Position numbers and translations under genes: made by a program. The notes below the pieces were generated by a model. That model saw only the letters and a program-made list of their open reading frames with translations, was not told the origin of the DNA and did no database searches. From assembly GCA_950097015.1 (NCBI GenBank), contig CATNEN010000037.1, positions 4,216,001 to 4,280,000 on the forward strand: a DNA stretch of 64,000 nt. Reading direction: 5' to 3'. The DNA is from Macrostomum hystrix. Lineage: Eukaryota; Animalia; Platyhelminthes. Every line of letters starts with the position of its first letter. Positions within the stretch are counted from its first letter, which is position 1. Positions 54,548-64,000 of this stretch are shown here, piece after piece.

Positions 54548-54928
54548 ATGAGTAACGCCAATCGACCAGGTCAGTACACCTATGGCTCGGGTGCCACGCC
54601 GCCTGGCAGTGCGGCCGGCAACACTGGAGGTTCTAATGTCCCCAATGACCAGATGAATAAACTGCAGCGCGAAGTTAATGATGTCACAGGCATCATGCGG
54701 GACAACATGAACCGCGTCATCGAGCGAGACGCTAACCTCAACGACCTGATGGCCAGATCCGACAATCTGCACGAGTCGGCCATTGTGTTTCAGCGCACCA
54801 CCCAGCGAGTGTCGCGTAAATACTGGTGGCAGAATACCAAGATGAAGATCATCATTGGTGTTGTTGTGGTTGTGCTCATTGTTATCATCGTCATTTCCAT
54901 TCTGGCATCTACTGGTGCTTTTAAGTGA
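54548..54928 (+). CDS. VAMP: Synaptobrevin/VAMP R-SNARE, intronless CDS
   Basis: R-SNARE motif LQREVNDVTGIMRDNMNRVIERDANLNDL, RKYWWQN and a C-terminal TM helix. Confidence 0.95.
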   Translation: MSNANRPGQYTYGSGATPPGSAAGNTGGSNVPNDQMNKLQREVNDVTGIMRDNMNRVIERDANLNDLMARSDNLHESAIVFQRTTQRVSRKYWWQNTKMKIIIGVVVVVLIVIIVISILASTGAFK

Positions 54929-57212: not shown

Positions 57213-58613
57213 TCAGATATAATTTAAAAGGCTCAAGTTAAGCTTAAAAGAGAATATCTGAGACTTGTCTTTTGCTCTGCGTTCCAGCATGTAGATTAGC
57301 TGCATCTCCGGGCTATAGACTGTGCAATAGGGGCTGAAGTTGAGGCTCAGGCGTAGCGCTAGGCTGAACCGCGGCACTGGGAAGCCATGCTGCTTCGTTT
57401 TTCTGAAGCCCGTGTAGCAGTACACATCCAGGCTCTTCTCCATCTCTTTGCTCAGCATGACAGTGCGGTGCGTGTCTTCCGCCTGGATGGTCACCTCGCC
57501 AATCATCGGAATGTCGTCAGCAAACGAAGTGAGCTTGAAGCCGGTGTCCAAATGAAACACAATCACGCGACCGTCATTCTGCACCGCCAGCAGATAGGTG
57601 AACAGCAGTATGCTGACGCAGAGGGGTCTGGTAAGGAAGCCCCGGCCAATCAACAGGCTGGTCTCCTCGGACATTGGCTTTCGCAAGTCGAACTGCATGA
57701 TGACGTCGTTGCTAAACGATTAAGGCACATCCAATCGAAAGGACAGGTTTTGGGTTATTCCTTGATTTTTTGTTAGCTTTATGATAAACCCATGTGGTAG
57801 TGCCACCCCGTGTGGTAGTGCCGCCCCCGTGTGGTAGTGCCACCCCGTGTGGTAGTGCCGCCCCCGTGTGGTAGTGCCACCCCGTGTGGTAGTGCCGCCC
57901 CCGTGTGGTAGTGCCACCCCGTGTGGTAGTGGTGCCTCCTGTAGTAGTGGCCCACCCATGTGGTATTGCCACCCCCATGTGGTAGTGCCGCCCCGTCGTA
58001 TCGTTGCACCCCGTGTGGTAGTGCCGCTTCCATCGTAGCGTTGCACCCCATGTGGTTGTGGCGCCCCCATGTGGTAGTGGTGCCCCCATCGTAGCGTTGC
58101 ACCCCAGTTATGGCGCCCCGAAACCGTGCCCCCAGGAAAAAAATCCAGGCTGCCCGTGTGGTAGGGTGGCCGCCTTAAAGCTGCCCGCCTTAAATAGACA
58201 ATCTGTGCTCACCGTCTGTCAGTGGCGAAAACGAAGTTTTCAACGAGTATTAGGCTGGTTAGATACCTGTGCCAGATCTCGTATTGATCAAGCACCTCAC
58301 CCTGCCGGTTGGCCTTGACCAGCCTGCCGTACGGATGCGTGAGGAACACGACAGTATCATTGTTAACAGCCACGGATGTCGCATCGATAATCCAAGTCTG
58401 CACACTGTGTTCTATCTTAAAGTTGTCGTTTCTGATGGCAAAGTTACTGACGATGCCGTGGTCGGAGTGCAGTGCCAGCAGTCGATTCTTGCACTTGTCC
58501 AGCCACAGCATCTCCACTGGCTCTGTAACGAAGTGTTCGTGAAGCTGAAAATATGGCGTGTCAGCGAGCCTGTCTGCTGTTGCAGCATTCGAAGAGCCGG
58601 CATTATGCGCCAT
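57213..58613 (-). CDS. Uncharacterised beta-propeller-like (NHL-type) protein, 2 exons
   Basis: Exon 58613-58213 (gtgagc donor, phase 2) joins in frame to 57711-57213; repeated beta-strand blocks (ATSVAVNNDTVVFLT, NFVFATDRRNDVIMQFD, LLAVQNDGRVIVFH). The fold call is inference. Confidence 0.7.
57790..58110. repeat. 18/19-bp minisatellite (GTGTGGTAGTGCCRCCCC)n, intronic
   Basis: Alternating 18/19-nt units that decay rightwards; inside intron 58212-57712. Confidence 0.95.
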
Positions 58614-58858
58614 TTTATCCGGACAGAACTATCTCAGCTTGTTGCTTCGTTTTACTACCAAATATACGACTAAGCTTCAACTGCTTGCCAAAAACGAGAA
58701 TGTCCGTCCGACCGTCCTACCGAATCCGCAAAACATTTTTAGTTTATGGCTGATCGGCATTTAATAAATCGATAAATAGAATATCAATATAGGATTCAAT
58801 ACTTGGTTTTGAGTGCTTAAATGTCTTGGCACGAGTGCGCGAAGCGCATTCCAAAATA

Positions 58859-60267
58859 TAGCTTTTTTCAGCCTATTTGGGCTTACGCGCATTTAATTTA
58901 ATCCGGGATATGTTTGTCAATGTAACTGAGCTTTAGTCTGTGGTCACAAGGGTGGCGCAGCAGCATTTAATTTAGTCCAAGAAGCATCAATTTGGTCCAT
59001 AGCGGCTCTCTAACTTCAGTCCTAGATTTTTAATCTATTTAGAATTAACATGACGGACACAAGCAGTGAGGACGAAAGCAATGCTTCATTTGCAACTGCT
59101 GCGGAGGAACAAGATCAGCCCCAGAATTGTGGACCATATGCTATCGAATGAGCGCCACGGACTTGTGATCGAAGCACTCGACAGAGGTGAACACCCAAAT
59201 GACATTGCAAGGTTGCTGAATGTCAAAGAAAAGACTATTTATAGCATCCGTCAGCGGGTTGAAACTACTGGCAGAAGAGATCGTCTGCGAAGGGGCGGCA
59301 ACCGCCAAAGCAAGTTGTTGGAGCCTCAGGTCCAACTGCTACTAGATGCAATTGAAGCAAACCCTCTGTTGACGTTGCAGCAAATGCAGCAGAAGTTGAA
59401 CCAACAGTTTCAGTTGGTTGTCAGCATTTCGACTATCAGCAGAGCTCTGGAAAAGCGACTGATAACACTGAAAATTCTTGGAAGAGACACTGACATTCGA
59501 ATTCGAGTCCAAATGTTGAATCCAGTCTCGTCTAGATAAACCAGATGAACCGCAGGGTCAAGAGCCGTTAGCCATTCAGCAAATTCCTGCCTTCTCGCAA
59601 CCGTCTGAGGGCTGTTGCGTACCATTGGAATGTCAGTGTCTCTTCCAAGAATTTTCAGTGTTATCAGTCGCTTTTCCAGAGCTCTGCTGATAGTCGAAAT
59701 GCTGACAACCAACTGAAACTGTTGGTTCAACTTCTGCTGCATTTGCTGCAACGTCAACAGAGGGTTTGCTTCAATTGCATCTAGTAGCAGTTGGACCTGA
59801 GGCTCCAACAACTTGCTTTGGCGGTTGCCGCCCCTTCGCAGACGATCTCTTCTGCCAGTAGTTTCAACCCGCTGACGGATGCTATAAATAGTCTTTTCTT
59901 TGACATTCAGCAACCTTGCAATGTCATTTGGGTGTTCACCTCTGTCGAGTGCTTCGATCACAAGTCCGTGGCGCTCATTCGATAGCATATGGTCCACAAT
60001 TCTGGGGCTGATCTTGTTCCTCCGCAGCAGTTGCAAATGAAGCATTGCTTTCGTCCTCACTGCTTGTGTCCGTCATGTTAATTCTAAATAGATTAAAAAT
60101 CTAGGACTGAAGTTAGAGAGCCGCTATGGACCAAATTGATGCTTCTTGGACTAAATTAAATGCTGCTGCGCCACCCTTGTGACCACAGACTAAAGCTCAG
60201 TTACATTGACAAACATATCCCGGATTAAATTAAATGCGCGTAAGCCCAAATAGGCTGAAAAAAGCTA
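58859..60267. mobile_element. Palindromic (fold-back) Tc1/IS630-like element: two inverted 5' halves
   Basis: Arms 58857-59498 and 59628-60269 (642 bp each, including TA) are reverse complements with identical ORF translations. The 129-bp spacer continues the minus-strand transposase to HLVYLDETGFNIWTR. TA at both outer ends; flanks unrelated. Confidence 0.9.
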
Positions 60268-60419
60268 TACTAGTCGAAAAAGTGCTGAACGCGCTGGGTG
60301 GAGTATGAGGGTCCTGGTTTGAGGTGTCCGTTGGAGTATAAGGGATTGATGTGTTGGGGGGTGTCATATGCGGTAGCGGTACAGCAAGCTGCCCGCCTTC
60401 TTCGGCCCCAAAGGACGGA

Positions 60420-60960
60420 CCACCAGGCTGTTTTTCAGCTCTGCCGCCAACGCATCTCCTCAGGAGGGTTTTCAGCTCTGCCGCCAACGCATCTCCTCAG
60501 GAGGGTTTTCAGCTCTGCTGCCAACGCATCTCCTCAGGAGGGTTTTCAGCTCTGCTGCCAACGCATCTCCTCAGGAGGGTTTTCAGCTCTGCTGCCAACG
60601 ACGACCAGCTGCCAATCCTCCTGTACGGACTGGAGGCAGTGCCGATGACTGACTCGAGGTCTCGAGCCCTTGACGCTGCCTACCGATCGCTGCTGCGGTT
60701 CGTCCTCAGCATCCACTTTCCAGAGCGGCTGCCGACGGACCTGCTGATGGCGCGAGCACGCGAGCCTCAGCTCAGCGCCACCCTCCAGCGGCACCGGCTG
60801 ATGCTTGTCGGCCACTTCCTCCGCAGCGGCGGCAGAGGGGAGCAAACCCTGCACGAGGACCATCATGCTGACCGCCACGCTGGAGTCTGACCTGCAACAC
60901 ATTAATCTGACCCCTCAATCTGCCACAAACTGTCCATCTCGTATTTTCTGCGAGCGCGTG
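60420..60960 (+). mobile_element. Non-LTR retrotransposon (RTE-like) RT C-terminal fragment
   Basis: LPILLYGLEAV...LDAAYRSLLRFVLSIHFPERL...RHRLMLVGHFLR matches the RTE/L2-type 'LlYG.E.W...lLR.il.i.w...rRL...GH..R' region; 5'-truncated. Confidence 0.8.
60425..60600. repeat. 37-bp tandem repeat (GGAGGGTTTTCAGCTCTGCYGCCAACGCATCTCCTCA)n, ~5 units, inside the LINE fragment
   Basis: Visible 37-nt period. Confidence 0.93.
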
Positions 60961-61808: not shown

Positions 61809-64000
61809 TTATATTTCAATTGGCTTGGGCCGCGGCTTCCTGATGTGCCGCATGTTGGAGCCTGGCTCAGTTGGCTTGAACGGCGCGTGACCGCCATACG
61901 GCCTGGGAATGGGCAACTCCACCTCGTCGTTCGGGATGTAGGCGTTCGGCCGCGGCTCGGCTGTGGTGACACCGCCGTGGCCCAACACGAACTGCTCCTG
62001 CTGCGCCGCCTGCGCCTGCGCCTCCTGGCGCTCGGTCTGGCGACGGTCTTCAACCATGCGAGACTTCAGCCATTCGGCTTCGATGTCTTCAGACGGTGGC
62101 TCGCCGCGCTCCATGCGCTGATAGCAGGACTGTAGGTACTGCTGCTTGTCCCGCACCTGCTGCTGCAGTTGCATGGCAGTGCTCATCAGCATGGTGAGTT
62201 CAGCCGTGCCGGCCTTCATTCGCTTGGTAACGGAGCCCATGCGGAACTTGTAGCCGTTTACTTCTTTGGCCAGGGCCAGAGTGTCGTGCTGGCCGGCCTT
62301 GCTCCGCCGCTCCAGCTGTTCCACCAGCCGGCCAACCGCCTCCAGCAGTAGTTGCCGCTCCAGCAGTTGTTCCTCCTTGGCTGCCAGGCGGATTTCCATG
62401 TCCTCGCACTTATTGTGCAGCTCAATGGGACCCGGGTCGGTGCCCTCTAGGTAGCGCAGCCGACCGTCCTGGCCGGGGTCCTCGGTGCGCGACTCCATCA
62501 GCAGCAGCCTGTCCTGACAGATGCTCAGCTGGATCTGCAGCACAGTCAGCTCGTCTTCAATCTGGCGCTTCTTCGGCAGCTTCTTCTTGGCCAGCTGCAC
62601 CTGACGCTCGTCCTCCTTCAGCTGGAGGCGCAAAAAGTCTAATTCTTCTTCGCGCTGACGCAGCTCCAGTTCGCCGCGCTGAATAACGGCCTCCTGCACG
62701 CGCACCTTCTCCTGAAGAACGTACACCTCTTCGTTGCGCTCGATGAGCTGCACGGCACGGTCGTTTAACAGCTGGACGGCTCGGTCGGACTGCTTGCGCA
62801 GCTGAACCATGGCCTCCTCGGAGGCATTCACCAGTCCGTTGAGTTGGTTGATGTCCAATTTTAGCTGCTCACGTACCTCGTTCTGCTCGTCGTCGTTATG
62901 TCGCTGCTTGCTCACCTGTTAATAGTTCAAGTGCACAGGCAGTTGAGCCATTTGTGCAAATTAAATTGATACATTCCTCGAGTTTTCATGTCAAAGAATT
63001 TTTTGACGAAGAGAATGGTCAACGGCTTTTATTGTTTTTTAAAGAATATTGTTAATTCCAACTCACCTCGTTGCGCAGCTGATCCCGCATCACAATCGAG
63101 TTGGCGTGACGTAGGCGCAGCTTTTGCAGGTGCTTCTCTCGTGTGCCTATGTTGGTGCGAAGAATCTCAACCTCGTTCTCCAGAATGCGAATCTTCTCTC
63201 GCATTTCTGAGGCCTTCTGGGCGGCCACCTGTACCAGGCTAACGCACTTGTTGCGCTCGTTTTTGATGACATCGTACAATTTGGCAAAGTCCTTCAGCTT
63301 CACTTCAAGCTCGCGGTGCTTCTTCTGGTGGTCCTGAATCTGCAACTGTCGACTCTTGAGGTCCTCAATGACACGTTTGTGCCGCATCTCTGCCTTCATG
63401 AAGTCTCGCGCCTTCTGTTCTCGCTCGTCGGCTTTGATAGCGGCCAGGCGAGTCAACTCGATGACTTCAATGCGCAGGTCCTGCAGCTTATACTGCAGCC
63501 GCTCCTCATCCTCAATGCTCTGGGTCACCTTGACCTGCTCTGCAGATGTCAGCGACGTCTCCTGGGCTACGTTGCGCCGGAAATCTTCGACCTCCTTGTC
63601 GAGGACAGCTTTTCGCTTCTCCATGGAGCCATCGTCGCGGGGCACGCTATCGAAATTCTGTTTTGTCTTCTCGTGTACCTGCGTCACCAAAGTGAGCGCA
63701 TCTTCGCTGGCCTTCTGCTGCAGCTGCGCCTTCTTAAGCGCCTTCAGCTCTCGCTCCTTCTCTCGCGCCTTTCGACTGTGTGTCTCCATCAGATTGCGTC
63801 GCTCTAGGTTCAAGTGACGCAGGTTCATGTCGATGGTGGCCCGGTCTGTAACCACCGTCATTTCCTTCTGGCGCAGCTCCTCCAAATCACCATTGATCTT
63901 ATCAACCGTCTCCTGGCTCTTTGAATTGCTGGTGACCTGTTGAGTGGCATCACGCTTCACGGTCTCCAGCTCTTTCGCCAGGCGACGAGATGCCTCCTCC
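61809..64000 (-). CDS. CCDC146: Coiled-coil domain-containing protein 146 (3' part; gene runs off the right edge)
   Basis: Exons >64000-63067 and 62915-61809 join in phase 0 (gtgagt/aacag); conserved C-terminus TTAEPRPNAYIP...LPIPRPYG..APFKPTEPGSNMRHIRKP..KPIEI. Confidence 0.93.

Follow-up and report, generated by a model that had tools for sequence, protein, structure and literature searches.

Structures in which part of a DNA transposon is duplicated in inverted orientation are already known, and the locus described here is a new example of them: a fold-back element of 1,413 bp in the 64,000-nucleotide stretch of the Macrostomum hystrix genome that we analysed (C37:4216001-4280000, hereafter the window), built from two inverted left ends of a Tc1-like transposon. 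The Goblin miniature inverted-repeat transposable element (MITE) of Aedes aegypti derives from one end of the Tc1/mariner element Ozma, and abortive gap repair with a strand switch has been proposed as its origin (PMC3814204). In maize, Mu killer (Muk) gives rise to a hairpin RNA that silences MuDR, and both small interfering RNAs (siRNAs) and heritable silencing have been demonstrated (PMC3440606). Alternative transposition coupled to replication creates inverted duplications of the maize element Ac (bioRxiv 10.1101/2020.01.07.897926). Macrostomum is a group of flatworms with PIWI pathways in the germline and in stem cells, and M. lignano is an emerging laboratory model (PMC4604429).

We compared the fold-back with each of these systems. 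It resembles Goblin in that both subterminal regions come from the same parent end in inverted orientation, in its microhomology-type junction and in being present in several copies. Goblin, however, measures 213 bp, has terminal inverted repeats (TIRs) of 54 bp, stems from the right end and retains a 28-bp left terminus of its own, whereas the window fold-back has 642-bp arms that include the 5' untranslated region and a third of the transposase gene, is left-type to the tip and exists in two or three copies. Mu killer comes from an active autonomous DNA transposon, of which it holds the TIR and the 5' portion of the transposase gene as an inverted duplication. The fold-back likewise duplicates a TIR together with 5' transposase sequence of a parent that is still present in intact copies, and read-through from a flanking gene is possible in both cases. 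Mu killer differs in belonging to the Mutator superfamily of a plant and in being a fixed locus without known transposition; its RNA and its silencing effect have been demonstrated, whereas the hairpin RNA of the fold-back is a prediction. The Ac composite insertions are also inverted duplications of fractured ends, generated by the element's own aberrant activity at the time of replication and transcribed from a promoter of the element or of a neighbour. In contrast to the fold-back they stem from a hAT element and form part of larger chromosomal rearrangements, and double-stranded RNA (dsRNA) and siRNAs have been shown for them.

Two further groups of long-armed elements were considered. The Foldback (FB) and Galileo elements of Drosophila share the very long inverted arms and the short centre, but their arms are made of tandem subrepeats and they belong to other superfamilies, whereas a repeat scan found no tandem subrepeats in the window arms and the parent is a Tc1-like element with a DDE_3 domain. 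Tc7 of Caenorhabditis elegans is reportedly long-armed, non-coding and mobilised in trans by the Tc1 transposase; only its outermost bases are said to match Tc1, the rest of the arm sequence being unrelated. The arms of the window fold-back, unlike those of Tc7, are ~99% copies of their parent. Finally, typical hairpin MITEs are miniature, measuring a few hundred bp, and of high copy number, whereas the fold-backs described below measure 619-1,413 bp and are three in all.

Structure of the fold-back and its parent

The fold-back was read directly as a unit at window positions 58857-60269 with a TA at each outer end (Table 1). The repeat scan returned a single inverted repeat (58857-59502 and 59624-60269). 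Compared base by base, the arms are perfectly complementary over 642 bp (58857-59498 versus 59628-60269) and enclose a spacer of 129 bp (59499-59627); the four additional arm bases given by the repeat scan contain one mismatch. With 642 bp of perfect inverted repeat, a chance match is impossible. The scan found no direct-repeat family within 58857-60269; sequence comparison gave only one pair of 16-bp direct repeats per TIR. The outer flanks are unrelated to each other, and the perfect palindrome TCGAATTCGA lies at the junction between the short arm and the spacer.

When the fold-back was compared with an intact copy of the parent (parent coordinates start at the first T of the flanking TA), the plus-strand copy corresponded to parent 1-647 and the minus-strand copy to parent 1-773. 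BLAST against the intact copy on C24 aligned the fold-back to parent 1-651 and 1-773 with ~99% identity. The spacer consists of parent 648-773 from the longer copy and of three bases, GAA (59499-59501), and it ends just past the first catalytic Asp, where the long minus-strand copy reads through ...VYLDETGFNIWTR. The catalytic domain past this Asp is missing, and the fold-back carries no transposase of its own. The initial annotation, which was made from the window sequence, had described two inverted 5' halves of a Tc1/IS630-like element with 642-bp arms, a 129-bp spacer ending just after the first catalytic Asp, outer TA dinucleotides, unrelated flanks and a mini-palindrome at the junction. 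All of these features were confirmed, and the 5' halves proved to be left halves of an element whose 1,659-bp parents are intact in the same genome.

A search of the genome (220 Mb in 42 contigs, same assembly) with the longer copy yielded two full-length copies of this parent, C24:2396621-2398279 and C30:1949100-1950758. Each measures 1,659 bp, counted from flanking TA to flanking TA, carries 146-bp TIRs with six mismatches (96% identity) and encodes an open transposase frame of 383 codons, and the two copies are 99.8% identical to each other. In Pfam, the 383-aa protein matched HTH_32/HTH_29/HTH_28 and then DDE_3 (PF13358, E 1.4e-23), and its catalytic triad was located at D184, D272 and E306. 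Its closest database relatives were unnamed proteins (57% identity), and its closest named relatives were a sea urchin 'Tc1-like transposase' (36%) and IS630 transposases. Hence the parent has a DDE_3-type transposase with an N-terminal bipartite helix-turn-helix (HTH), a TA duplication and TIRs, which are hallmarks of the superfamily. Because of the HTH and DDE_3 domains, the triad, the relatives and the nearly identical intact copies, we consider the parent a young, probably active member of the IS630/Tc1/mariner superfamily.

Each 146-bp TIR contains two 16-bp direct repeats with one mismatch, ~74 bp apart (parent 33-48 and 107-122; window 58889-58904 and 58963-58978). These may represent a layout like that of inverted repeat/direct repeat (IR/DR) elements, with two candidate transposase-binding sites per end. 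The intact copy on C24 is inserted at the end of a 213-codon open reading frame (ORF; L003:899-1540) with a FLLDTGAGHNF motif, which we take to be a retroviral-type aspartic protease region. By this label, the C24 copy sits within another mobile element.

A centre junction at two loci and the origin of the fold-backs

The young subfamily (at least 97% identity) consisted of six pieces in the genome search: the two intact copies, a right end on C7 (C7:9033765-9034205) and three left-left fold-backs, namely the window copy, C39:2942804-2943843 (1,040 bp) and C3:7435059-7435677 (619 bp). In the C39 copy, TTCGAA separates parent 1-773 from an inverted parent 1-261, and in the C3 copy parent 1-502 meets an inverted parent 1-116, the two sharing AATT as a 4-nt overlap. 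The arms of the C39 and C3 fold-backs differ by 1-2 bases each. Both the two intact copies and the three fold-backs have TA ends, and the 1.5-kb flanks of these five loci show no mutual similarity. We rejected the C7 match as a right-right fold-back, since it is a plain 441-bp right-end fragment, and likewise the relatives of 74-86% identity, which are ordinary internal-deletion derivatives. Two of the more distant copies, C10:333843-334788 and C41:340895-341823, are ~74-76% identical to the parent and consist of a parent-like 1-866 part and a right TIR (~940 bp). They seem to represent an older element of related type that was shortened by an internal deletion, an ordinary MITE-like form within the same superfamily that is not a fold-back.

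Positions 18, 32, 60, 65 and 125 distinguish the left from the right TIR in the intact copies, and the C7 fragment, a third right end, has right-type bases at 18, 60 and 65. At these last three positions, which set all three known right ends apart from the left ones, each of the three fold-backs is left-type in both arms. Thus, both subterminal regions come from the same parent end and are inverted (the window arms map to parent 1-647 and 1-773), and by these diagnostic bases the arms are left ends up to the very tip. The left-type tip bases argue for palindrome formation over a strand switch within the TIR.

A 28-nt string from the centre junction was found at exactly two places in the genome, the window and C39. 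The string TTCGAA followed by TTCGAGTCC... is present at the same two sites only, and the C3 junction is unique in the genome. Like the window copy, the C39 copy breaks at parent 773, and the next eight bases are identical in both. In the window, the eight comprise TTC and then five short-arm bases (parent 647-643, inverted), and in C39 they lead directly into parent 261 and inward. The C39 centre therefore equals the window centre with a further deletion, no base being left unexplained. In addition, both fold-backs have 638A and 666C, by which they differ from the intact copies. Most simply, the C39 copy would be a window-type fold-back that has lost a further 382 bp (parent 262-643) of its short arm at a CA microhomology. 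As independent events sharing both the breakpoint and the eight bases are very unlikely, the window and C39 copies probably go back to a single fold-back, and transposition probably brought at least one of the two to the TA site where it now lies. The intact copies would have supplied their 383-aa transposase in trans. The C3 copy may be a third descendant whose centre was deleted, or it may go back to an independent event. The suggestion in the initial annotation that the fold-back could move as a giant-TIR non-autonomous unit has thus gained evidence, as the genome-wide junction search found one further copy, that on C39, at a different TA site with unrelated flanks. Genome searches for an empty site with the left flank and the right flank gave no contiguous flank-flank copy.

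We estimate at about 80% the probability that the fold-back is a real non-autonomous left-left derivative of the young Tc1/IS630 transposon, which arose as a 773/773 palindrome, was trimmed and was moved in trans. A break or strand switch at parent 773 would have produced a perfect 773/773 palindrome. Sister-chromatid ends may have fused, a hairpin-capped end may have been replicated, or a fork may have switched template at the TCGA palindrome (parent 769-772), and each of these routes would duplicate the left flank too. The intact copies would then have provided the transposase that cut out both inverted left ends as one unit. A 123-bp deletion at a TC microhomology would have removed parent 648-770 from one arm and produced the window form, and the further 382-bp deletion would have produced the C39 form. 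The identity of the arms could stem from a recent copy or from mutual conversion between the arms. The GAA between the short arm and the centre equals parent 771-773, with CGAA/TTCG centred on 59501/59502. When GAA is read in this way, the 773/773 axis accounts for every base without filler. The initial annotation had proposed template switching or aberrant transposition, and an aberrant repair or replication event is supported. The replication-coupled alternative transposition known from Ac is a further documented way to such inverted duplications (bioRxiv 10.1101/2020.01.07.897926). Fold-back priming via a GAA/TTC microhomology as the sole step was rejected because it predicts a centre 6 nt shorter than the one seen, and a nested insertion of one copy inside another, as in double Ds, was rejected because there is no TA at parent 773/774.

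Several observations weigh against this reconstruction. The 773/773 precursor depends on three bases (GAA) and on 2-nt microhomologies. As there are only two or three copies, mobility is deduced from a single shared junction, and both the assembly and the insertion are represented here by one assembled sequence. Moreover, the 5-bp deletion present on both window arms (see below) is absent from the long arms of C39 and C3, a private C16A occurs on both C39 arms only, and the C39 arms differ from each other at position 227. Common descent of the window and C39 copies therefore requires either that one arm converted the other or that the C39 long arm was converted by another copy. Large palindromes usually show such conversion between their arms.

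The three loci and the parent form a nearly undecayed series that runs from the intact parent to a long-armed fold-back and then to shorter-armed fold-backs. It illustrates how a Tc1-like element can give rise to non-autonomous elements of the hairpin type and eventually to MITEs whose arms exceed the parent TIRs.

Possible silencing and competing explanations

Could the fold-back silence its own parent? In the predicted RNA fold of the unit (-1328 kcal/mol), the arms pair without a break over 642 bp and leave a loop of 129 nt. Transcripts could come from the element's own 5' region, which lies in each arm and would give convergent transcription, or from the neighbouring CFAP58-like gene. Both neighbouring genes are on the minus strand; the CFAP58-like gene lies upstream and ends at 61809, and therefore read-through from it would cross the fold-back. 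Any crossing transcript would form a dsRNA of ~640 bp matching the 5' third of the transposase mRNA. By analogy with maize, where Mu killer silences MuDR and inverted Ac fragments act on Ac in like manner, a Mu killer-like role through hairpin RNA is plausible. That the fold-back actually works as such a silencer, its transcribed hairpin being diced or fed to the PIWI pathway and quieting the two intact parents, would add a function to the palindromic origin and is compatible with it. The layout matches Mu killer (PMC3440606) and the Ac composite insertions from which dsRNA and siRNAs arise (bioRxiv 10.1101/2020.01.07.897926), and a PIWI-interacting RNA (piRNA) pathway is active in a Macrostomum species (PMC4604429). 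The predicted stem is perfect over its 642 bp, and a gene lies upstream on the same strand. The family is also very small, with two intact copies, but a low copy number fits a recent arrival equally, and the 99.8%-identical intact copies with their open frames show no sign that they are silenced. On balance, a working silencer seems to us unlikely.

A more far-reaching version extends this role to the whole fold-back family, which, as a derivative of a newly arrived Tc1-like transposon, would be a mobile, self-spreading silencer: its hairpin RNA would act against the first third of the transposase mRNA, the targeted transposase would move it, and each jump would seed a new source of small RNA. 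We regard this version as clearly unlikely. If true, maize Mu killer would have its first counterpart among animals in this family, and one that is able to transpose. Should the hairpin be transcribed, the locus would offer a ready test case for the first recognition of a new DNA transposon by an animal genome.

A different origin would dispense with transposition. Each fold-back could have arisen independently and in situ if gap repair was aborted after excision and the growing strand switched between the TIRs, as has been proposed for Goblin, a one-ended Tc1/mariner derivative (PMC3814204). This would explain without gene conversion why private variants (the 5-bp deletion in the window, C16A in C39) stand on both arms of one copy, and the C3 fold-back does have its own junction with a 4-nt AATT microhomology. 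However, two independent events are very unlikely to have given the copies on C37 and C39 the same break at parent 773 with the same eight bases after it, and a switch inside the TIR predicts right-type outer bases in one arm, whereas all arms are left-type at 18, 60 and 65. Independent formation at each locus is therefore improbable in our view, and we continue with the palindrome that was trimmed and moved in trans.

The coding capacity of the fold-back bears on another proposal of the initial annotation, namely that it has an HTH ORF in each arm and could encode a repressor limited to DNA binding. Four substitutions and one 5-bp deletion (parent 285-289) set both window arms apart from the intact copies; the deletion lies between 59140/59141 and is mirrored at 59985/59986. 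In both arms, the native frame runs from its ATG (59050 in the left arm) to a stop (59149-59151) after 33 codons. The HTH-coding sequence is present in each arm as annotated, but the 'HTH ORFs' of 157 and 216 codons are mechanical ORFs in a shifted frame with GTG starts. The sister copy on C39, on the other hand, has an intact 205-codon ORF from the native ATG, which covers the whole HTH region and the first catalytic Asp (L002:1694-2311 = C39:2942997-2943614). By its open frame, it is a better candidate for a truncated DNA-binding repressor than the window copy. Six ORFs, among them the transposase, the C39 ORF and those that span the junction, gave no match in an exact-sequence look-up. As the 5-bp deletion stops the native frame on both arms, the window copy is very unlikely to encode a truncated, KP-like protein that represses transposition: although HTH_32/HTH_29 coding sequence is present on both arms and the C39 sister keeps its frame, the HTH frame of the window copy could be reached only via an internal out-of-frame ATG.

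Palindromic chimeras are a known artefact of long reads and the window arms are 100% identical, but an artefact of this kind, or one from a repeat that was collapsed or wrongly joined, is less credible still, because the palindrome stops exactly at the transposon termini with their TA, the flanks are unique, differ from each other (as the initial annotation had already pointed out) and continue into genes on both sides, the locus lies 4.27 Mb inside its contig, the centre is asymmetric, and there are two more left-left fold-backs whose arms differ by 1-2 bases, one of them with the same junction.

Genomic surroundings

The fold-back sits in a 3.2-kb intergenic stretch that is rich in mobile elements, between the 3' end of the CFAP58-like gene and an unannotated ORF (Table 1). 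For this ORF (58613-58209) and for the next exon-like ORF (57698-57213), searched as separate exons, Pfam gave no match at E <= 0.1, and a protein atlas gave a weak beta-propeller lead for the left neighbour (score 0.92, low recognition). The fold-back had been placed ~245 bp upstream of an NHL-like ATG. The distance holds, but the NHL-like label finds no backing in Pfam. A location in a gene promoter is possible.

Table 1. Features of the fold-back and its neighbourhood in window coordinates.
Feature	Position	Strand	Basis
Neighbouring ORF, ATG at 58613, 244 bp from the element; gene identity unproven	58209-58613	-	No Pfam match; weak beta-propeller lead
Left flanking TA, target-site duplication common to all family copies	58857-58858		Five young copies read TA/TAGC...GCTA/TA, with unrelated DNA outside
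Short arm, left end of the parent; with the TA, parent 1-647; bears the 5-bp deletion	58859-59498	+	BLAST to the intact C24 copy; 642-bp complementarity; left-type bases at 18, 32, 60, 65 and 125
Native transposase start and frame in the left arm, stop after 33 codons	59050-59151	+	Read directly; 5-bp deletion relative to the intact copies
10-bp perfect palindrome TCGAATTCGA; its centre, 59501/59502, is the presumed centre of the original 773/773 palindrome	59497-59506		Direct reading
GAA, a 3-nt filler or (preferred) a putative remnant of parent 771-773 after the 123-bp deletion	59499-59501		Dissection of the junction against the parent
Unique part of the long copy, parent 648-773, encoding ...PMVRNSPQ...VYLDETGFNIWTR	59502-59627	-	Comparison with the parent
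Paired part of the long copy (right arm), parent 1-647	59628-60267	-	Repeat scan; BLAST; base comparison
Mirrored start codon and truncated 33-codon frame in the right arm	59975-60076	-	Mirror coordinates of 59050-59151
Right flanking TA	60268-60269		Direct reading
Fragment of a highly repeated ORF, right flank	60603-60887	+	At least 150 protein-level genome matches, many in open frames of 500-1,080 aa; no Pfam match
CFAP58-like gene, last two exon-like ORFs (63960-63052 and 62915-61809)	61809-63960	-	Pfam PF21771 CFAP58_CC, E 2e-8 and 2e-4

The final ~70 bp of the left flank (about 58786-58845) form one arm of a small hairpin repeat that is dispersed in the genome; the right flank is unique. 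Fuller copies of this hairpin repeat elsewhere in the genome (L039, L040) carry CCATAGAC near their centre. To the right of the fold-back, the highly repeated ORF fragment is retroelement-like, presumably the tail of a non-LTR retroelement, and a 37-bp tandem repeat in four to five copies (60424-60608) is fused to it in frame. A second tandem array, with an 18/19-bp unit (37-bp super-unit), occupies 57789-58175 between the two exon-like ORFs of the left neighbour and is probably intronic. Further away, at 54548-54928, the window contains an intact, single-exon synaptobrevin gene (PF00957, E 1e-28), whose best match is a Macrostomum lignano protein with 78% identity.

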